From the NCBI RefSeq assembly GCF_044704955.1, contig NC_091993.1, positions 116,994,001-117,058,000 of the forward strand: a DNA stretch of 64,000 bases, given 5' to 3'. The notes under the pieces are model-generated. The model saw nothing but the letters and a program-made list of their open reading frames with translations. It was not told the DNA's origin and did not search any database. A program made the position numbers and the translations under genes. This document shows positions 770 through 62,985 of this stretch, piece after piece (the stretch's first letter is position 1; every line of letters begins with the position of its first letter). The DNA comes from Pristiophorus japonicus (taxonomy: Eukaryota).

Positions 770-3700
770 ACATAAGAAGATAAGAAATAGGATCAGGAGT
801 AGGCCATATGGCCCCTCACGCCTGCTCCGCATTCAATAAGATCACGGCTGATCTGATCATGGACTCAGCTCCACTTCCCTGCCCGCTCCCCATAACATTT
901 TACTTCCTTATCGCTCAAAAATCTGTCTATCTCCACCTTAAATATATTCAACGACCCAGCCTCCACAGTTCTCTGGGACAGAGAATTCCATAGATTTACA
1001 ACTCTCTGAAAGAAGAAATATCTCCTCATCTCAGTTTTAAATGGCCGGCCCCTTATTCTGAGACTATGTCCCCCAGTTTTAGTTTTCCCTATGAGTGGAA
1101 ATATCCTCTCTGCATCCACCTTGTCGAGCCCCCTCATTATCTTATAAATTTCAATAAGATCACCTCTCATCCTTCTAAACTCTAATGAGTAGAGGCCCAA
1201 CCTACTCAACCTATCTTCGTAAGTCAACCCCCTCATCTCCGGAATCAACCTAGTGGACCTTCTCTGAACAGCCTCCGATGCAAATATATCCTTCCTTAAA
1301 TACGGATACCAAAACTGTACGCAGTACTCCAGGTGTGGCCTCACCAATACCCTGCACAGTTGTAGCAGCACTTCTCTGCTTTTATACTCTACCCCCCTTG
1401 CAATAAAAGCCAACATTCCATTTGCCCTCCTGATTACTTGCTGTACCTGCATACTAACTTTTTGTGTTTCATGCACAAGGACCCCCAGGTCCCTCTGTAC
1501 TGCAGCACTTTGCAATTTTTCTCCATTTAAATTAAAATTTGCTTTTCTATTATTTCTGCCAAAGTGGATAACCTCACATTTTCCCACATTATACTTCATC
1601 TGCCAAATGTTTGCCCACTCACTTAGCCTGTCTATATCCCTTTGCTGATTTTTTGTGTCCTCCTCACAATTTGCTTTCCCACCCATCTTTGTATCATCAG
1701 CAAACTTGGCTACATTATACTCGGTCCCTTCATGCAAGTCATTGATATAGATTGTAAATAATTGAGAGCCCAGCACCGATCCCTGTGGCACCCCACTAGC
1801 CAGTGTTTGCCAACCGGAAAATGACCCATTTATCCCAACTCTCTGTTTTCTGTTAGTTAGCCAATCTTTTATCCATGCTAATATATTACCCCCAACCCCA
1901 TGAGCATTTATCAGTTTGCAGTGATTGTGACCATCTTTAAAAAAGGGGACAAGTCCGACTGCGGCAACTACAGAGGAAGCTCCCTGCTATCAGCCACTGG
2001 GAAGGTCGTCACTAGAGTCCTCCTCAATCGTCTTCTCCCTGTGGCCGAGGAGCTCCTCCTGGAGTCGCAGTGCGGATTTCGTCCCCTCCGGGGCACAACG
2101 AACCTGATTTTTGCAGCGTGACAGCTGGAGGAAAAATGCAGGGAACAGCGCCAACCCTTATAAACGGCCTTCTTCAACCTTACAAAGGCCTTTGACACTG
2201 TCAACTGCGAGGGTCTATGGAGCGCCCTCCTCCGTTTCGGATGCCCCCAAAAGTACGTCACCATCCTCCGCCTGCTCCACGACGACATGCAGGCCGTGAT
2301 CCTGACCAACGGATCCATCACAGACCCAATCCAGGTCCGGACTGGGGGTCAAGCAGGGCTGCATCATCACCCCAACCCTCTTCTCAATCTTCCTCGCTGC
2401 CATGCTCCACCTCACAGTTGACAAGCTCCCCGTTGGAGTGGAACTAAACTACAGAACTGGTGGGAAGCTGTTCAACTGTCGTCGACTCCAGGCCAGGTCG
2501 AAGACCACTACAACCTCTGTCGTCGAGCTGCAGTATGCCTGCGTCTGTGCACACACAGAGGCTGAACTCCAGGACATAGTCAACGTATTTAATGAGGCGT
2601 ATGAAAGCATGGGCCTTACGCTAAACATCAGTAAGACAAAGGTCCTCCACAAGCCTGTCCTCGCCGCACAGAACTGCCCCCCCAGACATCAAGATCCACG
2701 GGGCAACCCTGGACAACGTGGATAATTTCCCTTATCTAGGGAGCCTCTTATCAACAAGAGCGGGCATTGACGACGAGATCCAACACCGCCTCCAGTGCGC
2801 CAGTGCAGCCTTCGGCTGCCTGAGGAAAAGAGTGTTTGAAGACCAGGCCCTCAAAACTGTCACCAAGCTCACAGGGCCGTAGTAATACCCGCCCCTCCTG
2901 TATGGCTCAGAGATGTGGATCATGTACAGTAGACACCTCAGTTCGCTGGAGAAAAACCAACAATGATGTCACCGCAAGATCTTACAAATCCCCTGGGAGG
3001 ACAGACGCACCAACATTAGTGTCCAGGCCAACATCCCCAGCATTGAAGCACAGACCACACTTGATCAGCTCCGCTGGGCAGGCCACATAGTTCGCATGCC
3101 AGACACGAGACTCCCAAAGCAAGCGCTCTACTCGGAACTCGTCCATGGCAAACGAGCCAAATGTGGGCAGAGGAAACGTTACAATGACACCTTCAAAGCT
3201 TCCCTGATAAAGTGCGACATCCCCACTGACACCTGGGAGTCCCTGGCCACAGACCGCCCTAAGAGAAGGAAGTGCATTCGGGAGGACGCTGAGCACCTCG
3301 AGTATTGTCGCCGCGAGCAGGTAGAAATCAAGCGCAGGCGGTGGACGGGCGTGCAGCAAGCCAGGCTCCCAGCCCACCCTTTCTTTCAACCACTGTCTGT
3401 CCCACCTGTGACAGAGACAGTGGTTCTCGTATTGGACTGTACAGCCACCTAAGAACTCATGCTAAGAGTGGAAGCAAGTTTTCCTTGATTCCGAGGGACT
3501 GCCTATGATGATGATGATCTTGTGCAGTAACCTCTTATGTGGCACCTTATCAAATGCCTCCTGGAAATCCAAATACACCACATCCACTGGTTCCCCCTTA
3601 TCCACTCTGCTCATTACATCCTCAAAGAACTCCAGCAAATTTGTCAAACATGATTTCCCTTTCATAAAACCATGCTGACTCTGCTTGATTGAATCATGCT

Positions 3701-17334: not shown

Positions 17335-18751
17335 CTATAAAATAAAATTATAATTAAAACATCATTTTATGATAAGAACTTTATTGAGCTCAAATATGCA
17401 ATGATTCCTGGTGGGTTGTATTCATTTAAGCAATATGTGATCAGTGTTTTAAGGAAAACATGATAAACACAATCTATCATAAGTTTTGTAGAAATGTTAC
17501 TCGTCTGAAAGATAGAAGAAGGAATTTATGTTTATGCATTTATGTAGTGCCTTCTCTCATCCTTAGGTGGTCCCAATGGCTTACAGAATACATTGGTTGC
17601 TAAAGAATATGATTCATAAATTACAACAACTTGTATTAATATAGCGTTCTTAACATTGTAAAACATTCCAAGGCACTTCAGAGGAGTGTTATATGACAAA
17701 ATATTTGACACCAAGCCACATAAGAAATTAGGGCGATGATTAAAGACTTGGTCAAAGAGGTAGGTTCTAAGGAGCGTCTTAAAGGAGGAAAGAAAGGTGG
17801 AGAGGTTTAGGGAGGGAGTTCCATAGCTTAGGGCCGAGGCAGTTGAAGGCAGGACCTCCAACTAGTCTATTGCAGCACCATACTAAGCCTCTTGAAAAAA
17901 TTCAAAGTGCACTGGAAAGGCACAAAGGAGGCAATTTTCCTGTTCCTGCATGAATTGAAACAAACATAGTTTCTCACTGGTGAGAGGCAGGAGTATAACA
18001 TCACTGGAGGGAGCCTGATTGCTTTCACTTGTGAATACCCCATTCTTTGTTTTCCTTTGAGACTTTTTCTTTTGTTAATTTGCCCCCTGCTTACCCCCTT
18101 GTCTTCTGCAGGTGTTGACTTTCACTGGCCTACAGTTACACCACTACCAGCTATCCCCTGATACCTTGCTCAAGTGCCCATTCAAAGTGAGTGAACCTGG
18201 GCAATGATTGCGGTTCAATTGTGGAAGACATCACAGTCATGCGCGATCCAATCCTCTCCACAAGCACACAACACTAGAAAAAGGAGAAGGAGTGGGCCAT
18301 TTGGCCTCTCGAGCCCGCTCCACCATTTAATAAGGTCATGGCTAATCTGATCTTGGGCTCAGCTCCACTTCCCTGCCCGCTCCCCATAACCCTTCACTCC
18401 CTTATCGCTCAAAAACCTGTCCACCTTAAATATATTCAATGACCCAGCCTCCACAGCTTTCTGGGACAGAGAATTCCACAGAGTTACAACCCTTTGAGAG
18501 AAGAAATTTCTCCTCATCTCAGTTCAAAATGGGCGACCCCTTATTCTGAAACTATGCCCCTTAGTTCTAGATTCCCCCACGAGGAGAAACATTCTCTCTG
18601 CATCTACCTTGTCGAGCCCCCTCTTATATGTTTCAATAAGATCACCTCTCATTCTTCTAAATTCCAATAAGTATAGGCCCAATCTGCTCAATCTTTCTTC
18701 ATAAGTCAACCGCTTCATCTCAGGAATCAACCTTGTGAACTTTCTCTGGAC

Positions 18752-19034
18752 TTTTTTTTTTATTCGTTGCCAATCTTTCCAATTCTTTGTCAAATCACAA
18801 ACGCCAGAGGTCACCTTGCACACATCAAGGATCACTCTGCGCCAAAGCTCTTAGCCAAAAGGCCGAGAGCCACTGCACCGTTCCTGGAAGTACTGCAATA
18901 CCAGGTTCGTGCCATGGAGGTGGATGGGTCAGGCCTCCCACACCTCCGTGGAGATGGATGGGTCAAGCCACCCCACCCACCTCCTATTTCCAAAAAGCAT
19001 AGGAGAATCACCTTCCTGATTCAGGGAGAACCAC
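18752..19034 (-). mobile_element. snRNA-derived SINEU-like retroposon, second tandem 5'-truncated copy
   Basis: Near-identical to 19036-19322; ends in AAT(A)10. Confidence 0.85.
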
Positions 19035-19035
19035 G

Positions 19036-19382
19036 TTTTTTTTAAAAATTCGTAGCCAATCTTTCCAATTCTTTGTCAAATCACAAACGCCAGAGGTCAC
19101 CTTGCACACATCAAGGATCACTCTGCGCCAATGCTCTTAGCCAAAAGGCCGAGAGCCACTGCACCGTTCCTGGAAGTACTGCAATACCAGGTTCGTGCCA
19201 TGGAGGTGGATGAGTCAGGTCCCCCACACACCTCCGTGGAGGTGGATGGGTCAAGCCACCCCACCCACCTCCTATTTACAAAAAGCATAGGAGAACCACC
19301 TTCCTGATCCAGGGAGAACCACTTTGGGGTCATGGTTACTCCCCTGTCAGGTCAGTTACGCATGATCTTAGCCAAAAGGCCG
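19036..19382 (-). mobile_element. snRNA-derived (U2/U1 chimeric) SINEU-like retroposon, longer copy
   Basis: Minus strand reads: U2 nt10-29 (19382-19363); U1 5'/stem-loop I-like (19358-19309); second U1 piece (19309-19285); U2 3' half from the Sm region to SL IV (19284-19160); U2 5' again (19156-19135); unique tail; A-tract. Confidence 0.85.
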
Positions 19383-19810
19383 CCGTCAATGCAAGTATAT
19401 CCCTCCTTAAATAAGGTGACCAAAACTATATGCAGTACTTTAGGTATGGCGTCGCCAATACCCTGTACAGTTGTAACATTTCACAACTCTCAAGAAAAAT
19501 ATATTCCAGTGAGGAGGAAAGGGTGTAAAAGAAAAGATAGCCATCTGTGGCTAACTAAAGAAATAAAGGACAGTATCCAATTAAAAACAAGGGCTCTCAA
19601 AGTGGCCAAAACTAGTGGGAGGACAGCTACGTTTGCATAGGCTGGGGTGATCGGACCCAGGTCTTCTGGTTTCTATGCCTTAAAACTACTGCGAGGCAGC
19701 TCATACTGACTCCTACTAGCAAAGGTTTGTATCTTCAATGATAATGATAATGACATTGGGTTGGTGAATTTCTGAGTTTCATTCCCTCATAGATAGTTCC
19801 TCCTCTCTGC

Positions 19811-22736
19811 CATAGAAACATAGAAACATAGAAAATAGGTGCAGGAGTAGGCCATTCGGCCCTTCTAGCCTGCACCGCCATTCAATGAGTTCATGGCTGA
19901 ACATTCAACTTCAGTACCCCATTCCTGCTTTCTCGCCATACCCCTTGATCCCCCTAGCAGTAAGGACCTCATCTAACTCCTTTTTGAATATATTTAGTGA
20001 ATTGGCCTCAACAACTTTCTGTGGTAGAGAATTCCACAGGTTCACCACTCTCTGGGTGAAGAAGTTCCTCCGCATCTCGGTCCTAAATGGCTTACCCCTT
20101 ATCCTTAGACTGTGACCCCTGGTTCTGGACTTCCCCAACATTGGGAACATTCTTCCTGCATCTAACCTGTCTAACCCCGTCAGAATTTTATATGTTTCTA
20201 TGAGGTCCCCTCTCATTCTTCTGAACTCCAGTGAATACAAGCCCAGTTGATCCAGTCTTTCTTGATAGGTCAGTCCCGCCATCCCGGGAATCAGTCTGGT
20301 GAACCTTCGCTGCACTCCCTCAATAGCAAGAATGTCCTTCCTCAGGTTAGGAGACCAAAACTGTACACAATACTCCAGGTGTGGCCTCACCAATGCCCTG
20401 TACAACTGTAGCAACACCTCCCTGCCCCTGTACTCAAATCCCCTTGCTATGAAGGCCAACATGCCATTTGCTTTCTTAACCGCCTGCTGCACCTGCATGC
20501 CAACCTTCAATGACTGATGTACCATGACACCCAGGTCTCTTTGCACCTCCCCTTTTCCTAATCTGTCACCATTCAGATAATAGTCTGTCTCTCTGTTTTT
20601 ACCACCAAAGTGGATAACCTCACATTTATCCACATTATACTTCATCTGCCATGCATTTGCCCACTCACCTAACCTATCCAAGTCGCTCTGCAGCCTCACA
20701 GCATCCTCCTCGCAGCTCACACTGCCACCCAACTTAGTGTCATCCGCAAATTTGGAGATACTACATTTAATCCCCTCATCTAAATCATTAATGTACAGTG
20801 TAAACAGCTGGGGCCCCAGCACAGAACCTTGCGGTACCCCACTAGTCACTGCCTGCCATTCTGAAAAGTACCCATTTACTCCTACTCTTTGCTTCCTGTC
20901 TGACAACCAGTTCTCAATCCATGTCAGTACACTACCCCCAATCCCATGTGCTCTAACTTTGCACATCAATCTCTTGTGTGGGACCTTGTCGAACGCCTTC
21001 TGAAAGTCCAAATATACCACATCAACTGGTTCTCCCTTATCCACTCTACTGGAAACATCCTCAAAAAATTCCAGAAGATTTGTCAAGCATGATTTCCCTT
21101 TCACAAATCCATGCTGACTTGGACCTATCATGTCACCTCTTTCCAAATGCACTGCTATGACATCCTTAATAATTGATTCCATCATTTTACCCACTACCGA
21201 TGTCAGGCTGACCGGTCTATAATTCCCTGTTTTCTCTCTCCCTCCTTTTTTAAAAAGTGGGGTTACATTGGCTACCCTCCACTCCATAGGAACTGATCCA
21301 GAGTCAATGGAATGTTGGAAAATGACTGTCAACGCATCCACTATTTCCAAGGCCACCTCCTTAAGTACTCTGGGATGCAGTCCATCAGGCCCTGGGGATT
21401 TATCGGCCTTCAATCCCATCAATTTCCCCAACACAATTTCCCGGCTAATAAGGATTTCCCTCAGTTCCTCCTCCTTACTAGACCCCCCGACCCCTTTTAT
21501 AACCGGAAGGTTGTTCGTGTCCTCCTTCGTGAATACCGAACCAAAGTACTTGTTCAATTGGTCCGCCATTTCTTTGTTCCCCGTTATGACTTCCCCTGAT
21601 TCCGACTGCAGGGGACCTACATTTGTCTTTACTAACCTTTTTCTCTTTACATATCTATAGAAACCTTTGCAATCCGTCTTAATGTTCCCTGCAAGCTTCT
21701 TCTCATACTCCATTTTCCCTGCCCTAATCAAACCCTTTGTCCTCCTCTGCTGAGTTCTAAATTTCTCCCAGTCCCCAGGTTCGCTGCTATTTCTGGCCAA
21801 TTTGTATGCCACTTCCTTGGCTTTAATACTATCCCTGATTTCCCTTGATAGCCACGGTTGAGCCACCTTCCCTTTTTTATTTCTATGCCAGACAGGAATG
21901 TACAATTGTTGTAGTTCATCCATGCGGTCTCTAAATGTCTGCCATTGCCCATCCACAGTCAACCCCTTAAGTATCATTCGCCAATCCATCTCAGCCAATT
22001 CACGCCTCATACCTTCAAAGTTAGCCTTCTTTAAGTTCTGGACCATGGTCTCTGAATTAACTGTTTCATTCTCCATCCTAATGCAGAATTCCACCATATT
22101 ATGGTCACTCTTCCCCAAGGGGCCTCGCACAACGAGATTGCTAATTAATCCTTTCTCATTACATAACACCCAGTCTAAGATGGCCTCCCCCCTAGTTGGT
22201 TCCTCGACATATTGGTCTAAAAAACCATCCCTTATGCACTCCAGAAAATCCTCCTCCACCGTATTGCTTCCAGTTTGGTTAGCCCAATCTATGTGCATAT
22301 TAAAGTCACCCATTATAACTGCTGCACCTTTATTGCACGCACCCCTAATTTCCTGTTTGATGCCCTCCCCAACATCACTACTACTGTTTGGAGGTCTGTA
22401 CACAACTCCCACTAACGTTTTTTGCCCTTTGGTGTTCTGCAGCTCTACCCATATAGATTCCACATCATCCAAGCTAATGTCCTTCCTAACTATTGCCTTA
22501 ATCTCCTCCTTAACCAGCAATGCTACCCCACCTCCTTTTCCTTTTATTCTATCCTTCCTGAATGTTGAATACCCCTGGATGTTGAGTTCCCAGCCCTGCT
22601 CATCCTGGAGCCACGTCTCCGTAATCCCAATCACATCATATTTGTTAACATCTATTTGCACAGTTAATTCATCCACCTTATTGCGGATACTCCTTGCATT
22701 AAGACACAAAGCCTTTAGGCTTGTTTTTTTAACACC
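19811..22736 (-). mobile_element. Young 5'-truncated CR1 LINE with intact ORF2
   Basis: (TTTCTATG)n 3' tail at 19811-19835; CTCTGC target-site duplication at 19805-19810 and 22737-22742. Confidence 0.95.
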
Positions 22737-22757
22737 CTCTGCACTGCTCCCCAACAT
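19911..22757 (-). CDS. CR1 ORF2: APE endonuclease + reverse transcriptase, 948 aa, uninterrupted
   Basis: EN motifs NARS, ETW, YRPP, GDFN, SDH; RT motifs YLDFQKAFDKV, GVPQGSVLGP, FADD. Confidence 0.93.
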   Translation of the reverse strand: MLGSSAEGVKKTSLKALCLNARSIRNKVDELTVQIDVNKYDVIGITETWLQDEQGWELNIQGYSTFRKDRIKGKGGGVALLVKEEIKAIVRKDISLDDVESIWVELQNTKGQKTLVGVVYRPPNSSSDVGEGIKQEIRGACNKGAAVIMGDFNMHIDWANQTGSNTVEEDFLECIRDGFLDQYVEEPTRGEAILDWVLCNEKGLISNLVVRGPLGKSDHNMVEFCIRMENETVNSETMVQNLKKANFEGMRRELAEMDWRMILKGLTVDGQWQTFRDRMDELQQLYIPVWHRNKKGKVAQPWLSREIRDSIKAKEVAYKLARNSSEPGDWEKFRTQQRRTKGLIRAGKMEYEKKLAGNIKTDCKGFYRYVKRKRLVKTNVGPLQSESGEVITGNKEMADQLNKYFGSVFTKEDTNNLPVIKGVGGSSKEEELREILISREIVLGKLMGLKADKSPGPDGLHPRVLKEVALEIVDALTVIFQHSIDSGSVPMEWRVANVTPLFKKGGREKTGNYRPVSLTSVVGKMMESIIKDVIAVHLERGDMIGPSQHGFVKGKSCLTNLLEFFEDVSSRVDKGEPVDVVYLDFQKAFDKVPHKRLMCKVRAHGIGGSVLTWIENWLSDRKQRVGVNGYFSEWQAVTSGVPQGSVLGPQLFTLYINDLDEGIKCSISKFADDTKLGGSVSCEEDAVRLQSDLDRLGEWANAWQMKYNVDKCEVIHFGGKNRETDYYLNGDRLGKGEVQRDLGVMVHQSLKVGMQVQQAVKKANGMLAFIARGFEYRGREVLLQLYRALVRPHLEYCVQFWSPNLRKDILAIEGVQRRFTRLIPGMAGLTYQERLDQLGLYSLEFRRMRGDLIETYKILTGLDRLDAGRMFPMLGKSRTRGHSLRIRGKPFRTEMRRNFFTQRVVNLWNSLPQKVVEANSLNIFKKELDEVLTARGIKGYGEKAGMGY

Positions 22758-25275: not shown

Positions 25276-28200
25276 TGTTGTGTATGTGTAAAGCATGCAC
25301 TCCCATGTTCCGCCACCAGGGAGTGCATCCCCTGAAGTCCCAAGGGATGCTGGGATCCCTTGGGAGCACTGTATATAAGCCGGCCCCTAAGGCCTGTTCC
25401 TCACTCTGGAGTGTCTTAATAAAGACTGAGGTCACTGTTACTTTAACCTCCCTGTGTGCAATCTCATCTGTGTTAGGAACACAATAACTGGCGACGAGTG
25501 TATGAATCCAACGCAAAGATGCAGCAAACTGTGGGCATCCTGGAGAAGTTCTCGGAGGGTGAGGACTGGGAAGCCTATGTCGAACAGCTAGACCAGTACT
25601 TTGTAGTCAACGAGCTGGACGGAGAAGGAAGCGCTGCAAAAAGGAGAGCGGTCCTCCTCACGGTCTGCGGGGCACCGACCTACAGCCTTATGAAGAATCT
25701 TCTGGCTCTGGTGAAACCCACAGACAAGTCGTATGAGGAGCTGTGTACACTGGTTCGGGAGCATCTTAACCCGAGGGAGAGCGTGCTGATGACAAGGTAT
25801 CGGTTCTTCAAGTGCCAGCGATCTGAAGGTCAGGAAGTGACGAGCTATGTTGCCGAGCTAAGGCGACTTGCAGGACAATGTGAGTTTGATGGCTACCTGG
25901 AGCAAATGCTCAGAGACCTTTTTGTACTGGGCATTGGCCACGAGATCATCCTACGAAAACTTTTGACTGTAGAGACACTGACCCTCAGTAAGGCCATTGC
26001 GATAGCACAGACGTTTATGTCCACCAGTGATAACATCAAACAAATCTCTCAGCACACAAGTGCGAGCAATGTTCAGAAATTAACTGGAACCGTGTTTGCG
26101 AGTTGAAATGTACAGGGCAGAAACCACGAGTCTGCAACTGCCAGCAGGCCTCAGGTGAGCCAGATGACTCAGAGTCCGCAACAAAGATGAATGCAAGGCA
26201 ATTCACATCTTGTTGGCGTTGTGGAGGCTTCTATTCAGCCTATTCATGCCGCTTCAAAGGGTATGTTTGCAAGAGCTGCAAGCTCTGCAAAACCTACTAA
26301 CCACCACGTGGCAGAGGAAGATCGGTCCATGGTGGATCAAAGCAATTTCGAGCCTCAGAGAGAGGAGGCAGATGCTGAAGTACACGGGGTGCACACATTG
26401 TCGACGAAATGTCCACCTATAATGCTAAATGTAAAATTGAATGGCTTACCCGTAGCCATGGAACTGGACACTGGCGCTAGCCAATCCATCATGAGTAAAA
26501 AGATGTTTGAGGGACTGTGGTGCAACAAGGCACTCAGACCAGCCCTGAGCCCCATCCACACGAAACTGAGAACGTACACCAAAGAGCTCATCACTGTCCT
26601 GGGCAGTGCCATGGTCAAGGTCACCTACGAGGGGACGGTGCACAGATTGTCCCAGTCGATGGCCCCACACTGCTTGGAAGGAGCTGGCTGGGCAAAATCC
26701 GCTGGAACTGGGGATGACATCCGAGCGCTGTCACATGTCGATCAGGCCTCATGTACCCAGGTTCTTAACAAATTTCCTTCCCTTTTTGAGCCAGGCACTG
26801 GAAGCTTTTCCGGGGCGAAGGTGCGCATCCACTTGGTCCCAGAGGCACGATCCATTCACCACAAGGCGCGAGCAGTACCTCACATGATGAGAGAGACAGT
26901 GGAAATCGAGCTGGACAGGCTGCAACGCGAGGGCATCATTTCCCTAGTGGAATTCAGCGAGTGGGCCAGCCCGATTGTTCCAGTGCTCAAAAGTGATGGC
27001 ACGGTCAGGATTTGCGGCGATTATAAAGTAACTATTAATCGTTTCTCGCTACAGGACCAATACCCGCTACCTAAGGCAGACGACCTATTTGCGACGCTGG
27101 CAGGAGGCAAGACATTCACTAAGCTCGACCTGACTTCGGCCTACATGACGCAGGAGCTAGAGGAGTCTTCGAAGGGCCTCACCTGCATCAACACGCACAA
27201 GGGACTGTTCATCTACAACAAATGCCCGTTTGGAATTCGGTCGGCTGCAGCGATCTTCTAAAGAAACATGGAGAGCCTATTCAAGTCGGTACCACGCACG
27301 GTGGTTTTTCAGGACGACATATTGGTCACGGGTCAGGACACCGTCGAGCACCTACAAAACCTGGAGGAGGTCCTCCAGCGACTGGATCGCATAGAGCTGT
27401 GGCTGAAGAGGTCGAAATGCGTCTTCATGGCAACAGAAGTGGAGTTTTTGGGGAGAAAGATCACGGCGGATGGCATTCGGCCCACAGACGCCAAGACAGA
27501 GGCTATCAGGAACGCGCCCAGGCCACAGAACATCATGGAGCTGCGGTCGTTCCTGGGTCTCCTCAACTATTTTGGTAACATCCTACCGGGGTTAAGCACC
27601 CTCTTAGAGCCCCTACATGTGTTATTGCGTAAAGGTGAGATCTAGGTATGGGGAAAAAAACAAGTAATTGCTTTTGAGAAAGCCAGAAGCATTTTATGCT
27701 CCAACAAGCTGCTTGTATTGTATAACCCGTGTAAAAGACTTGTGCTAGCATGTGATGTGTTGTCGTACGGAGTCGGGTGTGTATTACAACAAGCTAACGT
27801 TGCGGGGAAGTTGCAAACTGTCGCCTATGCCTTCAGGAGCTTGTCTAAGGCCGAGAGGACCTATAGCATGATTGAGAAAGAGGCATTAGCGTGTGTGTTC
27901 GGGGTAAAGAAAATGCATCAGTACCCGTTTGGCCTCAAATTTGAGCTGGAAACCAATCACAAGCCCTTCATATCCCTGTTCGCTGAAAACAAGGGGATAA
28001 ATACTAATGCCTCAGCCCGCATACAAAGGTGGGCACAGGTGCTATCAGCATATAACTATACCATCCGTCACAGGCCAGGCACCGAGAACTGTGCGGATGC
28101 TCTCAGTCGGCTACCATTGCCCACCACGGGGGTGGAAATGGCGCAGCCTGCAAACTTGTTGATGGTGGCGCAGCCCGCAGACTTGTTGATGGTCATGGAA

Positions 28201-29795
28201 GCATTTGAAAATGATAAATCACTGTCACGGCCCGTCAGATTAGGACTTGGACCAGCCAAGATCCTCTGCTATCCCTAGTAAAAAACTGTGCCAGCATCCC
28301 CGTTGAAATGCAAGAGCTAATCAAGCCATTCCAGCAGCGAAAGGACAAGCTGTCCATTCAGGCAGACTGCCTGTTGTGGGGTAACTGTGTAGTGCTACCC
28401 AAAAAGGGCAGGGAGACGTTCATCCACAGCACACACCCGGGTATAGTAATGATGAAAGCGATAGCCAGATCCCATGTGTGGTGGCCCGGTATCGACTCTG
28501 ACTTAGAGCCCTGTGTACGGCAATGCAGCGTGTGTGCTCAGTTGAGCAACACGCCCAGAGAGGCACCACTAAGTTTGTGGTCCTGGCCCTCCAGACCATG
28601 GTCGAGGATCCATGTCGACTATGCGGGCCCGTTTCTCAGTAAAATGTTCCTGGTGGTGGTGGATGCTTTTTCAAAATGGATTGAATGTGAAATAATGTCG
28701 GGAAGCACCGCCACCATCACCATTGAAAGCCTGAAGGCCATGTTTGCCACCCATGGCCTGCCTGACATACTGGTCAGTGACAACGGGCCATGTTTCACCA
28801 GTGCCGAATTTAAAGAATTCATGACCCGCAATGGGATCAAACATGTCACCTCGGCCCCGTTTAAACCAGCCTCCAATGGGCAGGCAGAGCGGGCAGTACA
28901 AACAATCAGACCCTTAAATGAGTCACGGAAGGCTCACTCCAAACCCACCTGTCCCGAGTACTGCTCAGCTACTGCACGAGACCCCATTCGCTCACAGGGG
29001 TGCCCCCGGCTGAGCTACTCATGAAAAGGACACTTAAAACCAGACTCTCGCTGGTTCACCCCAACCTGCATGATCAGGTAGAGAGCAGGCGGCAGCAACA
29101 AAATGTAAACAATGGTCACGGCACTGTGTCACGGGAAATTGATCTGTATGACCCTGTGTATGTGCTAAACTATGGACATAGTCCCAAGTGGATCGTGGGC
29201 ACGGTGATAGCTAAAGAAGGGAGTAGGGTGTTTGTAGTCAAACTAGACAATGGACAAATTTGCAGAAAGCACCTGGACCAAATGAGGCTGCGGTTCACAG
29301 ACTGCCCTGAACAACCCACAGCAGACACCATCTTTTTCGAGCCCACAACACACAGCCAAAGGATCAATGACACCATCCTGGAAATCAAACCCATCACGCC
29401 CAACAGCCCAGCAAGGCCATGCTCACCCAGCAGCCCTGCAGGGCCAACAATACGCCAGCCCAGCGAGGGCACAGCCAACACACCAGAACAGACATTTGTA
29501 CCGAGGCAGTCCACCAGGGAAAGAAAGGCTCCCAACCACCTCACCTTGTAAATAGTTTTCACTTTGACTTTGGGGGGGGAGTGATGTTGTGTATCTGTAA
29601 AGCATGCACTCCCATGTTCCGCCACCAGGGAGTGCATCCCCTGAAGTCCCAAGGGATCCCAGCATCCCTTGGGAGCACTGTATATAAGCCGGCCCCTAAG
29701 GCCTGTTCCTCACTCTGGAGTGTCTTAAGAAAGACTGAGGTCACTGTTACTTTAACCTCCCTGTGTGCAGTCTCATCTGTGTTAAGAACACAATA
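25276..29795 (+). mobile_element. Full-length decayed Ty3/Gypsy LTR retrotransposon inserted in a SINE
   Basis: 211-bp LTRs 25276-25486 and 29585-29795; GCAGC TSD; PBS TGGCGACGAG 25489-25498; PPT 29572-29584. Confidence 0.96.
25519..29551 (+). pseudogene. Gypsy gag-pol (Gag, LDTGA protease, FQDD RT, RNase H, integrase with HPG/VDYAGP/SDNG) with several stops and frameshifts
   Basis: ORF pieces 25498-26106, 26191-27261, 27268-27645, 27718-28278, 28308-29024, 29000-29551 in PR-RT-RH-IN order. Confidence 0.93.
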
Positions 29796-42434: not shown

Positions 42435-44048
42435 AAGATAATGGGATTAAAGGCAGATAAATCCCCTGGACCTTATGGGTTGCGTCCTCGGGTCTTAAGA
42501 GCAGTAACAGCAGGGATTGTAGATGCATTGGTTGTAATTTACCAAAATTCCTTGGATTCTGGGGAGGTCCCAGCAGATTGGAAAATGGCAAATGTGACGC
42601 CCCTATTTAAAAAAGGAGGCAGACAAAAAGCAGGAAACTATAGACTAGTTAGCCTAACACCTGTGGTTGGGAAAATGTTGACGTCCATTATTCAAGAAGC
42701 AGTAGCAGGACATTTAGAAAAGCAAAATTCGGTCAGGTAGAGTCAGCATGGATTTATGAAGGGGAAGTCATGTTTGACAAATTTGCTGGAATTCTTTGAG
42801 GATGTAACAAACAGTGTGGATAAAGGAGAACCAGTGGATATGGTGTATTTGGACTTCCAGAAGGTATTTGACAAGGTGCCACATAAAAGGTTATTATACA
42901 AGATAACAGTTCACGGGGTTGGGGGTAATATATTAGCATGGATAGAGGATTGGCTAACTAACAGAGAACAGAGAGTGGGGATAAATGGTTAATTCTCTGG
43001 TTGGCAACCAGTAACTAGTGGGGTGCCTCAAGGATCAGTGATGGGACCCCAACTATTTACAATCTATATTAACGACTTGGAAGAAGAGACTGAGTGTAAC
43101 GTAGCCAAGTTTGATGACGATACAAAGATGGGAGGAAAAGCGATGTGTGAGGAGGACACAAAAAATCTGCACAAGGACATAGACAGGCTAAGTGAGTGGG
43201 CAAAAATTTGACAGATGGAGTATAATGTTGGAAAGTGTGAGGTCAAGCACTTTGGCAGAAAAAAAATCAAAGAGCAAGTTATTATTTAAATGGAGAAAGA
43301 TTGCAAAGTGCCGCAGTACAGCGGGACCTGGGGGTACTTGTGCATGAAACACAAAAGGATAGTATGCAGCTACAGCAAGTGATCAGGAAGGCCAATGGTA
43401 TCTTGGCCTTTATTGTAAAGGGGATGGAATATAAAAGCAGGGAAGTCTTGCTACAACTATACAGGGTATTGGTGAGGCCACACCTGGAATACAGCGTGCA
43501 GTTTTGGTTTCCATATTTACGAAAGGATATACTTTCTTTGGAGGCAGTTCACAGAAGGTTCACTAGGTTGATTCCGGAGATGAGGGGGTTGACTTATGAG
43601 GAAAGGTTGAGTAGGTTGGGCCTCTACTCATTGGAATTCAGAACAATGAGAGGTGATCTTATCGAAATGTATCAGATTATGAGGGGGCTTGACAAGGTGG
43701 ATGCAGAGAGGATGTTTCCACTGATGGGGGAGACTAGAACTAGAGGGCATGATCTTAGAATAAGGCGCCGCCCATTTAAAATAGAGATGAGGAGAAATTT
43801 CTTCTCTCAGAGGGTTGCAAATCTGTGGAATTTGCTGCCTCAGAGAGCTGTGGAAGCTGGGACATTGAATAAATTTAAGACATAAATAAACAGTTTCTTA
43901 AACGATAAGTGGATAAGGGGTTATGGGGAGCGGGCAGGGAGGTGGAGTTGAGTCCATGATCAGATCAGCCACGATCTTATTGAATGGTGGAGCAGGCTCG
44001 AGGGGCCGAATGGCCTCCTCCTGTTCCTATTTCTTATGTTCCTATGTT
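42435..44048 (+). mobile_element. CR1 LINE, 5'-truncated and decayed
   Basis: RT ORF pieces 42440-43885; TTCTTATG tail; CAATC(A/G)GT TSD. Confidence 0.9.
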
Positions 44049-56587: not shown

Positions 56588-59500
56588 TAGAAACATATAA
56601 ACATAGAAAATAGGTGAAGGAGTAGGCCATTCGGCCCTTCAAGCCTGCACCACCATTCGATAAGATCATGGCTGATCATTCCCTCAGTACCCCTTTCCTG
56701 CTCTCTCTCCATACCCTTTGATCCCCTTAGCCGTAAGGGCCATACCTAACTCCCTCTTGAATATATCCAATGAACTGGCAAAAACAACTCTCTGCGGCAG
56801 GGAATTCCACAGGTTAACAACTCTCTGAGTGAAGAAGTTTCTCCTCATCTCAGTCCTCAGACTGTGTCCCCTGGTTCTGGACTTCCCCAACATCAGGAAC
56901 AATCTACCTGCATCTAACCTGTCCCGTCCCGTCAGAATCTTGTATGTTTCTATGAGATCCCCTCTCATCCTTCTAAACTCCAATGTATAAAGGCCCAGTT
57001 GATCCAGTCTTTCCTCATATGTCAGTCCAGCCATTCCGGGAATCAGTCTTGTGAACCTTCGCTGCACTCCCTCAATAGCAAGAATGTCCTTCCTCAGATT
57101 AGGAGACCAAAACTGAACACAATATTCCCGGTGAGGCCTCACCAAGGCCCTGTACAACTGCAGTAAGACCTCCCTGCTCCTATACTCAAATCCACTAGCT
57201 ATGAAGGCCAACATACCATTATCCTTCTTTACCGCCTGCTGTACCTGTATGCCAGCTTTCAATGACTAATGAACCATGACACCCAGGTCTCGTTGCACCT
57301 CCCCTTTTCCTAATCTGCCGCCATTCAGATAATATTCTGTCTTCGCGTTTTTGCCACCGAAGTGGATAACCTCACATTTATCCACATACTGCATCTACCA
57401 TGCATTTGCCCATTCACCTAACCTGTCTAAATCACCTTGTAGCCTCCTAGCATCCTTCTCACAGCTCACACCACCATCCAGTTTAGTGTCATCTGCAAAC
57501 TTGGAGATATTACACTCAATTCCTTCATCCAAATCATAGATGTACATTGTAAAGAGCTGGGGTCCCAGCACTGAGCCCTGCGGCACTCCACTAGTCACTG
57601 CCTGCCATTCTGAAAAGGACCCGTTTATCCCGACTCTCTGCTTCCTGTCTGCCAACCAGTTCTCTATCCACGCCAGTACATTACCCCCAATACCATGCGC
57701 TTTGATTTTGCACACCAATCTCTTGTATTGGACCTTGTCAAAAACCTTTTGAAAGTCCAAATACACCACATCCACTGGTTCTCCCTTGTCCACTCTACTA
57801 GTTACATCCTCAAAAGATTCCAGAAGATTTGTCAAGCATGATTTCCCCTTCATAAATCCCATCCTGACTTGGACCGATCCTGTCACTGCTTTCCAAATGC
57901 GCTGCTATTTCATCCTTAATGATGATTCCAACATTGTCCCCACTACTGATGTCAGGCTAACCGGTCTATAATTACCTGCTTTCTCGCTCCCTCCCTTTTT
58001 AAAAACTGGTGTTACATTAGTCCTTAGGAACTAATCCCAAGTCGATAGACTGTTGGAGAATGATCACCAATGCATCCACTATTTCTAGGGCCACTTCCTT
58101 AAGTCCTCTGGGATGCAGACTATCAGGCCCCGGGGATTTATCGGCCTTCAATCCCATCAATTTCCCTAACACAATTTCCCGCCTATTAAGGATATCCTTC
58201 AGTTCCTCCTTCTCACGAGACCCTCGGAATCCTAGCACTTCCGGAAGGTTATTTGTGTCTTCCTTTGTGAAGACAGAACCAAAGTATTTGTTCAATTGGT
58301 CTGCCATTTCTTTGTTTCCCACTATAAATACACCTGAATCTGACTGCAAGGGACCTACATTTGTCTTCACTAATCTTTTTCTCTTCACATATTCATAAAA
58401 GCTTTTGCAGTCAGTTTTTATGTTTCCGGCAAGCTTCTTCTCATACTCTATTTTACCCCTCTTAATTAAACCCTTTGTCCTCCTCTGCTGAATTCTAAAT
58501 TTCTCCCAGTCCTCAGTTTGCTGCTTTTTCTGGCCAATTTATATGCCTCTTCCTTGGATTTAACGCTATCCTTAATTTCCCTTGTTAGCCACAGTTGAGC
58601 CACCTTCCCCGTTTTATTTTTACTCCAGACAGGGATGTACAATTGTTGAAGTTCATCCATGTGATCTTTAAATGTTTGCCATTGCCTATCCACTGTCAAC
58701 CCTTTAAGTATCATTTGCCAGCCTATTCCAGCCAATTCACACCTCATACCGTCGAAGTTACCTTTCCTTAAGTCCAGGACCCTAGTTTCTGAATTAACTG
58801 TGTCACTCTCCATCCTAATAAAGAATTCTACTATGTTATGGTCACTCTTCCCCAAGGGGTCTCGCACAACAAGATTGCTAATTAGTCCTTTCTCATTACA
58901 CATCACCCAGTCTAGAATGGCCAGCTCCCTGGTTGGTTCCTCGACATATTGGTCTAGAAAACCATCCCTAATACACTCCAGGAAATCCTTCTCCACCGCA
59001 TTGCTACCAGGTTGGTTAGCCCAATCAATATGTAGATTAAAGTCACCCATGATAACTGCTGTAGCTTTATTGCATGCATCCCTAATTTCTTGTTTGATGC
59101 TGTCCCTAACCTTACTTCTACTGTTTGGTGGTCTGTACACAACTCCCACTAGCGTTTTCTGCCCTTTAGTATTCCGTAGCTCCACCCATACTGATTCCGC
59201 ATCATCCAAGCTAATGTCCTTTCTTATTATTGCATTAATTTCCTCTTTAACCAGCAATGCCACCCCGCCTCCTTTTCCTTTCTGTCTATGCTTCGTAAAT
59301 GTTGAATACCCCTGGATGTTGAGTTCCCAGCCTTGGTCACCCTGGAGCCATGTCTCCGTGATGCCAATTACATCATACCCGTTAACTGCTATCTGCGCAG
59401 TTAATTCGTCCATCTTATTCCAAATACTCCTCGCATTGAGGCACAGAGCCTTCAGGCTTGTCTTTCTAACACACTTTACCCCTTTAGAATTTTGCTGTAA

Positions 59501-59705
59501 TGTGGCCCTTTTTGCTTTTTGCCTTAGGTTTCTCTGCCCTCCACTTTTACTTTTCTTCTTTCTATCTTTTGCTTCTTCCCCCATTCTACTTCCCTCTGTC
59601 TCCCTGCCTTCCCCCTGCCATATTAGTTTAACTCCTCCCCAACAGCACTAGCAAACACTCCCCCGAGGATATTGGTTCCGGTCCTGCCCAGGTGCAGGCC
59701 GTTAC
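56588..59705 (-). mobile_element. Decayed CR1 with the end of ORF1 and a near-complete broken ORF2
   Basis: ORF pieces 58466-59584 (EN), 58017-58388, 57395-57886, 56684-57262; LHLGRTGTN ORF1 end at about 59630-59700; older relative of 19811-22736. Confidence 0.92.
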
Positions 59706-60967: not shown

Positions 60968-62985
60968 CATAAGAACATAAGAACTAGGAGCAGGAGTAGG
61001 CCATTTGGCCCCTAGGGCCTGTCCCGCCATTCAATAAGATCATGGTTGATCTGATTATGGACCCAGCTCCACTTCCCTGCCCGCTCCCCATAATCCTTTA
61101 TTCCCTTATCGCTCAAAAATCTGTCTATCTCCTCCTTAAATATATACAATGACCCAGCCTCCACAGCTCTCTGGGGCAGAGAATTCCACAGATTTACAAC
61201 CCTCTGAGAGAAGAAATTCCTCCTCATCTCAGTTTTAAATGGGCTGCCCCTTATTCTAAGACTATGTCCCCTAGCTTTAGTTTCGCCTATGAGTGGAAAT
61301 ATCCTCTTTGCATCCACCTTGTCGAGCCCCCTCATTATTTTATATGTTTCGATAAGATCACCTCTTTTTCTTCTGAACTCCAATGAGTATAGGCCCAATC
61401 TACTCAACCTATCTTCATAAGTCAACCCCCTCATCTCCGGAATCAACCTAGTGAACCTTCTCTGAACAGCATCCAATGCAAGTATATCCCTCCTTAAATA
61501 CGGAGACCAAAATTGCACGCAATACTCCAGGTGTGGCCTCACCAATACCCTGTACATTGGTGCAGGACTTCTCTGCTTTCAGACTCCATCCCCCTTACAA
61601 TAAAGGCCAACATTCAATTTGTCTTCCTGATTACTTGCTGTACCTGCATACTAATGTTTTCATGCAAAATGAACCCCAGGTCCCTCTGTACTGCAACACT
61701 TTGCAATTTTTCTCCATTTAAATTATAATTTGTTTTTCTATTTTTTCTGCCGAACTAACTACTGCTGGTTAATAAATGCTGTGAGTCAGATATTTGCGTG
61801 AATCCCGTCATTTGTGAATATTACAAAGAAACAACATACGAACATATGAATAATGACGGACAGGTAAAGACGCACTGGTCCATCGGCCTGTTACACACAA
61901 TTGTGATACCTTGTGTATCACAGCACATACACTCCACCCCACCCCAAACCATGTGATCTCCTGGGAGAGGCAAAAAAACAGTTATATAAACCCAGGCCAA
62001 TTTGCGATAAAAATATTTGCGAAATTCCTCTCCGACCCATCTAGGCGATTGAAACTAGTCCAGGAGATCACTCTGGCCCTGAATTCCCTGCAGTACCTAC
62101 CTTCTGTAAGAGATGATCTCCACCGCAGCCAGAAACAAATCCAGCTGTCGCTGAAAGGAATTCAGAGAATGAACGTCTGCTGCACGAGACGGCAGCTTGT
62201 TCCAGAGGTCCACTATTCTCTGGGAAAAGAACCACCTCCTAACATCTCACCTAGATCCAGCCTTTACAATTCAAATTTGTGACCCCTGGTCCTGCCTAAC
62301 CTGTTTAATTGGAACAAACTCTCTGCTGGAACAACATCAATTCCCTTCATTATTTTAAAAACCTCAATCAGTCTACTCTTCTCTGAGGTATAGAGTCCTA
62401 ACTCTTTTCGCCTATCTTTATAACTAAGATGCTTTAGACTGGGAATTACACTAGTGGCCCTCCTCTGCATCCTTTCCAAAGCCACAATATCTCCCCTCCC
62501 GCCCCCCCCCCCCCATGTAAGGCAAGGGAGGGAAACATCCAAGTGCTTTATGAAGAAAGGTTGAGCAGGTTGGAGTTTAGAAGAATGAAATGTGATCTTA
62601 TTGAAACATATAAGATTCTGAGGGGGCTTGACAGGGTAGATGCAGAGAGGATATTTCCCCTCATCGGGCAATCCAGAACTAGGGGGCATAGTTTCACAGT
62701 AAGGGGTCACCCATTTAAAATGGAGATGAGGAGGAAATTCTTCTCTCAGAGGGTTGTGAATCTTTGGAAATGGGGTAGAAAGCTGTGGAAGCTGTCATTT
62801 AATATACTTAAGGTGGAGATAGACAGATTCTTGAATGACATGAGTGTCAAGGGTTATGGGGAGCGGGCAGTAAAGTGGAGTTGAGGCCAAGATCAGATCA
62901 GCCATGATCTTATTGAATGGCGGAGCAGGCTCAAGGGGCCAACTGGCCTACCCCTGCTCCTATTTCTTATGCTCTTATGTTCTTA
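60968..62985. mobile_element. Three CR1 3' fragments (60968-61752 -, 61835-62490 -, 62545-62985 +)
   Basis: ORFs 61012-61557, 62264-62490, 62543-62884 with CR1 tails. Confidence 0.85.

Follow-up and report, generated by a model that had tools for sequence, protein, structure and literature searches.

snRNA-headed SINEs have been published from one lineage only, the crocodilians. The minus strand of positions 18752–19382 in a 64-kb window, the whole stretch of DNA that was analysed, raises the question of whether such elements have also arisen elsewhere. It carries one element in two copies, head-to-tail, within a CR1 LINE remnant. A second, distant lineage with the layered U1/U2 design would, if true, mark this design as a repeatable product of particular LINE machinery and not an accident, and would offer a second case against which to look for the promoter and the partner LINE. 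Should the element be restricted to a single locus, it would be no more than an unusually complex retropseudogene. The structure of the element and of its insertion site suggests that this is probably a new, independently arisen retroposon of SINEU type in an elasmobranch, short, non-coding and ending in poly(A).

A U2/U1 mosaic in two adjoining copies

The two copies of the element (Table 1) share approximately 94.5% identity over 290 nt, as measured by BLASTN and a repeat finder. The sequence-only reading had placed the element twice in tandem, and the copies do adjoin, each with an A-run; these runs are separate, A8 in copy A and A10 in copy B, and the start of copy B is the first base after the A-run of copy A. 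The letters of 19158–19193 recur identically in copy B at about 18872–18907. Outside this block there are 8 mismatches, mostly transitions in the head, plus a few small gaps. An assembly artefact as the source of the tandem pair was rejected because the copies differ at ~5.5% of positions. No third copy was found elsewhere in the 64-kb window by BLASTN, which leaves one locus there. The coding content of both copies is limited to short chance ORFs. The motif AATAAA closes copy B and touches its A-run; it is not read as a working polyadenylation signal.

Table 1. Coordinates of the element, its component blocks and the CR1 copies in the window.
Feature	Position	Strand	Description
Copy A	19036-19382	minus	347 nt, the longer copy; mosaic, tail and T5A8
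Copy B	18752-19035	minus	284 nt; 5'-truncated in U1 stem-loop I; remainder is the same mosaic and tail; own A10 run at 18752-18761
U2 5' piece 1	19357-19382	minus	U2 nt ~10-35, stem-loop I; U2 model alignment
U1 5' piece	19309-19358	minus	U1 nt 1-~49, 5' end and stem-loop I; Rfam, hairpin in fold
Partial U1 stem-loop I repeat (3' half)	19290-19308	minus	By-eye comparison with U1 consensus
U2 Sm-site region (oligo-U) and stem-loop III	19234-19289	minus	Rfam, fold
Second, diverged U2 stem-loop III (internal duplication)	19194-19233	minus	Rfam, fold
U2 stem-loop IV to mature 3' end	19158-19193	minus	Rfam U2 match only
U2 5' piece 2	19131-19157	minus	U2 nt ~1-30; abuts U2 3' end directly; Rfam
Non-snRNA tail	19049-19130	minus	82 nt; imperfect hairpin; copies A and B identical except for two transversions
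Copy A 3' end, T5A8	19036-19048	minus	Copy B directly next
Interrupted CR1, upstream half	19383-19470	minus	Remnant of ORF2 C-terminal region; sibling alignment
Interrupted CR1, downstream half	18300-18751	minus	Reaches CR1 3' region; sibling alignment
Sibling CR1 copies with site unoccupied	61262-61556 (-), 1064-1367 (-), 43449-43750 (+)		80-84% identical to host CR1

Rfam was run twice, with gathering thresholds over the whole window and in E-value mode on 1 kb and on sub-pieces. The gathering-threshold scan of the whole 64-kb window gave no matches, which excludes real snRNA genes and identifies the pieces as fragments. In E-value mode, a cmscan-type search matched both of the snRNAs that had been named from the sequence, in every case below gathering. 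Across the 1 kb, U2 was matched at 36.2 bits (E=1.8e-5, 18868–19160; gathering 46 bits) and U1 at 26.1 bits (E=2e-4, 19239–19358; gathering 69.5 bits). The head alone (19194–19400) matched U1 with E=4.2e-5 and U2 with 23.5 bits and E=0.004. Both snRNA alignments contain long insertions and are missing functional regions. The second U2 5' piece is identical to positions 7–26 of the U2 model at 20 of 20 positions (19135–19154), and at three places the U2 stem-loop I consensus is matched exactly over 20 nt. Each testable item in the earlier description of the U2 and U1 pieces was found in its place, by Rfam or in the sequence.

No likeness to tRNA, 5S or 7SL was found at E<=10 in the E-value mode search of the 1 kb. 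The earlier account had the snRNA part followed by a non-snRNA tail of roughly 90 nt and then poly(A); the tail measures 82 nt, has no match to any Rfam family at E<=10 in either copy, and is followed by the A-run. A U6 origin of the tail was considered and rejected as unsupported, there being neither U6 nor any other Rfam family at E<=10 in either copy. Sub-threshold matches to Prion_pknot occur on the plus strand at 19198–19249 (27.5 bits) and 18912–18961 (24.6 bits). They fall on the reverse strand of the duplicated U2 stem-loop III and, together with sub-threshold miRNA matches, were set aside as by-products of that duplication.

Read 5' to 3', copy A consists of U2, U1, a second partial U1, U2, a second partial U2, the U2 3' end, a U2 5' piece and the tail. 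The snRNA blocks begin at or beside nt 1 of the source snRNA and each abuts the next, most tellingly where U2 nt ~1 comes straight after the mature U2 3' end. The 5' limit of the first U2 piece is uncertain by 3–5 nt, its GGC possibly being CR1 flank, and this piece overlaps the U1 5' piece on a common GTA. The head folds into the expected snRNA hairpins at -84.7 kcal/mol (z=-3.8), and none of the shuffled sequences folded as well. The tail folds into one imperfect hairpin (z=-1.6). T4 and T5 runs are present in head and tail.

The CR1 host and its insertion site

The three sibling CR1 copies of the window, in which the site is unoccupied, read ...CATTG GAGGC TGT TCAGAGAAGG... across the empty site. 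Against these uninterrupted copies, no target-site duplication (TSD) is present around the element, and the loss of target sequence is at most 1–2 nt. The interruption of the CR1 had been described as clean and without a clear TSD, and the siblings confirm both points.

A neighbouring CR1 copy on the minus strand has an uninterrupted ORF2 of 948 codons (19911–22757) with APE and RT domains, the latter at residues 506–725, and its 3' end extends to about 19815. This copy may have been recently active. The insertion point of the element maps near codon 813 of this ORF2, in the C-terminal coding region and past the RT domain. Among named proteins, those closest to this ORF2 belong to Chiloscyllium punctatum (76% identity across 40% of the query) and Mobula birostris (58%), with bird and turtle CR1 proteins at 41–46%. 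These relatives support an elasmobranch host, in agreement with the earlier view that this was probably a shark genome. The CR1 copies at the locus terminate in a short (TTTCTATG)-type repeat without poly(A), and CR1 is therefore an improbable driver of an element that ends in poly(A).

Other retroelements are present in the window. A more distant CR1-like LINE is located at 56630–59584 on the minus strand, with an APE-domain ORF at 58466–59584 and a 3' region sharing 68% identity with the host CR1. Consecutive ORFs at 26191–29551 on the plus strand hold protease, RT and integrase parts of an LTR retrotransposon, with the Pfam domains gag-asp_proteas, RVT_1, rve and Integrase_H2C2. One database relative of the CR1 ORF2, at 50% identity, is assigned to Carnobacterium maltaromaticum, a bacterium associated with fish, and several JGI records call such proteins 'RPP40'. 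These entries look like cases of host contamination and misannotation among public records.

Proposed assembly and mobilisation, and evidence on copy number

The Rfam matches, the block order and the A-runs uphold the structural part of the sequence-only reading, in which U2 and U1 pieces form a chimeric retroposon with a poly(A) end and the architecture of SINEU. The body was probably assembled by jumps of reverse transcriptase from one template onto abundant spliceosomal RNAs. A U2 3' end abutting U2 nt ~1 is what would result if the enzyme ran to the 5' end of one template and then jumped to another abundant RNA. The oldest module would be U2 nt ~1–30 with the 82-nt tail, and to this the U2 3' half, then the U1 5' piece and then a further U2 5' piece would have been added successively at the 5' end, besides two internal partial duplications, of U1 stem-loop I and U2 stem-loop III.

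Since there is no internal pol III promoter and there are several oligo-U runs, the RNA most likely comes from pol II transcription or from read-through that begins at a flanking promoter, and one or a few loci would be its source. As U2 nt ~1 is where the 3' module begins, the external promoter is possibly of U2 type. Copying would have been in trans, through target-primed reverse transcription. The enzyme would come from a LINE that uses poly(A), most likely a member of the Tx1/L1 group rather than the host CR1. The first landing would have been in the CR1 ORF2 remnant, and the 5'-truncated copy B would then have entered the same junction after the A-run of copy A. Copy B would be the later of the two whether priming took place in the A-run of copy A or a sequence-specific target was used again at the downstream junction. 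The truncation of copy B, its own A-run, its start right after the A-run of copy A and the ~5.5% divergence fit two retrotransposition events of one pre-assembled mosaic RNA. Two observations count against this reading: BLASTN found no LINE sharing the tail in the 64-kb window, and there is no TSD to prove target-primed insertion.

Evidence on copy number comes from the share of sampled words found in sequencing runs. The query was the 801-nt stretch 19036–19836, of which the element makes up 43%, and 78 words were sampled, so that these shares cover the element and its flanks together. In four DNA runs from one organism, 0.65–0.70 of the 78 words were present. Three small runs of 109–165 million letters, from the same organism and another study, contained 0.28–0.37 of them, and these runs could be RNA or targeted libraries; in two other organisms the share was 0.04–0.05. 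A single-copy locus would hardly be assembled from so few letters, and part of the 801-nt stretch is therefore probably high-copy or expressed. For the element itself the small-run shares give a hint of multiplicity, and the reading as a family rests on this hint together with the two separate insertions at the locus. A protein-word search with the 46-aa frame of 19196–19333, for spurious gene calls on other copies, gave no candidate. Exact patterns gave no matches either for a 24-mer of the tail in metagenome and viral contigs or for the U1/U2 junction in metagenome contigs, collections in which shark repeats are not expected.

The same locus could have been generated without any family, as a one-off chimeric retropseudogene. 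A single LINE event would have passed through several template switches (U2, U1, U2, U2 and the 3' end of an mRNA or LINE), with copy B formed later by local tandem duplication of the 3' 290 nt. The pair consists formally of nt 1–347 and nt 58–347, an arrangement that could equally come from one insertion by tandem duplication of its nt 58–347, which also counts against the SINEU-type reading. However, the end of such a duplication must coincide precisely with the final A of the element and its start with a point typical of 5' truncation, and the A-runs are unlike (T5A8 against A10). The 5.5% divergence means that both copies are old or of different sources. Chimeric snRNA retrocopies formed by template switch are well documented in mammals, according to work cited in PMC4494074, yet four or five switches in a single event would be extreme. 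L1-type chimeric retropseudogenes are recognised by a single event and a TSD of 10–20 bp, whereas the present locus lacks a TSD and holds two copies of one mosaic that differ in their 5' ends. A single locus is what is seen directly, while the word shares of the small runs point the other way. Taken as a whole, a one-off origin is unlikely.

It is similarly improbable that the element is a non-autonomous derivative of a target-specific LINE of Tx1/Keno type instead of a SINE proper. U2 nt 1–30 and the tail would then be a deleted LINE that had inserted into a U2 gene and was co-transcribed from the U2 promoter. The 3' end of this LINE would be the tail, and a preference of this LINE for the CR1 ORF2 site would explain the stacking of the copies. 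The 3' module does begin at about U2 nt 1, as a U2-promoter transcript would, and an insertion close to codon 813 of the 948 in ORF2, beyond the RT domain, is in keeping with such a derivative. Keno and Utopia insert in U2 genes (PMC4640811), Keno groups with the crocodilian Tx1-Mar, and U1 or U2 heads are present in some Tx1 families (PMC4494074, PMC4640811). Against this, the junction between U2 and the tail is at about nt 30 and not at the Keno/Utopia site, the 64-kb window contains neither a Tx1 element nor a match to the tail, and the site is vacant in the three sibling CR1 copies. A further reading, that the locus holds working genes for variant snRNAs or for a structured non-coding RNA and not a mobile element, is effectively refuted, despite the retained snRNA hairpins and a head that folds better than its shuffles. 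The scores are far under gathering (36 against 46 bits for U2, 26 against 69.5 bits for U1), the block order fits neither snRNA, the U1 end that pairs with the 5' splice site has two changes and the U2 branch-point region is absent. The A-runs, the 5' truncation and the location in a dead CR1 are marks of a retrocopy.

The SINEU-type reading can be extended, tentatively and with some doubt, to a dispersed, independently evolved elasmobranch family made (almost) entirely of snRNA pieces, which would have an external U2-type promoter and be moved by a sequence-specific Tx1-clade LINE that targets one CR1 ORF2 site, alongside a 5S-headed passenger. If true, this would be a second, convergent partnership of Tx1 and an snRNA-derived SINE, ~450 million years from the crocodilian one, and would imply that capture of U1 and U2 is an inherent tendency of Tx1 reverse transcriptases. 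With a CR1-targeting Tx1 as the partner, the locus would be a natural case of LINE-in-LINE targeting with passengers.

Comparison with known snRNA-linked retroelements

Keno, of the Tx1 clade, and Utopia, of the NeSL clade, are autonomous LINEs found in U2 genes at nt 38/39 (PMC4640811). They share with the present element the physical linkage of U2 sequence to a non-LTR element, and U2 nt 1, at about which the 3' module begins here, would also be the start of any co-transcript made from the U2 promoter. They differ in that the present element is non-coding, 347 nt long and located in a CR1, with its U2/tail junction near nt 30. Template-switch chimeras made by L1, in which U6, U1 or U2 is joined to L1, Alu or an mRNA (Buzdin 2002, Garcia-Perez 2007, as cited in PMC4494074), resemble it in layout, at least as they are represented in that paper: the snRNA lies 5' of the 3' end of another RNA, the junctions are at snRNA ends and the end is poly(A). 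In the same account these chimeras are independent single events with TSDs at L1-type targets, unlike the one mosaic that occurs here twice, with different 5' ends and no TSD.

The closest architecture is that of SINEU-1 and SINEU-2, described in crocodilians only, with recurrent 5' additions and a link to Tx1 (Kojima 2015, Genome Biol Evol 7:1702, PMC4494074); the account of SINEU given in the sequence-only reading agrees with this paper. Template switch is proposed there for both the stepwise growth seen in SINEU-1 and the 5' extensions found in SINEU-2, and the author himself poses as an open question how SINEU comes to be transcribed when it has no internal promoter. No description of SINEU, or of an snRNA-derived SINE, in cartilaginous fishes was found in the set of full-text papers searched.

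Like SINEU (PMC4494074), the element is shorter than 500 bp, non-coding and ends 3' in poly(A), with a 5' part composed of U1 and U2 pieces. As in SINEU-2, the core consists of a U1 5' piece and the U2 3' half joined together, and the module of U2 nt 1–30 and the tail corresponds to the short U2 head on a unique 3' body of SINEU-1J. What appear to be layered 5' additions, and partial duplications within the snRNA parts, are also common to both, as are 5' truncation, tandem insertion, which is frequent in SINEU, and insertion without TSD or alteration of the target. The element also has internal oligo-T runs and lacks a recognisable pol III promoter, again as in SINEU. An origin independent of the crocodilian SINEU is likely, on a comparison with the published architecture. 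The present element differs from SINEU in its elasmobranch host, in the fusion of both SINEU plans in one element, and in its target, which is a CR1 ORF2 remnant here and Mariner-N4_AMi in the crocodilians.
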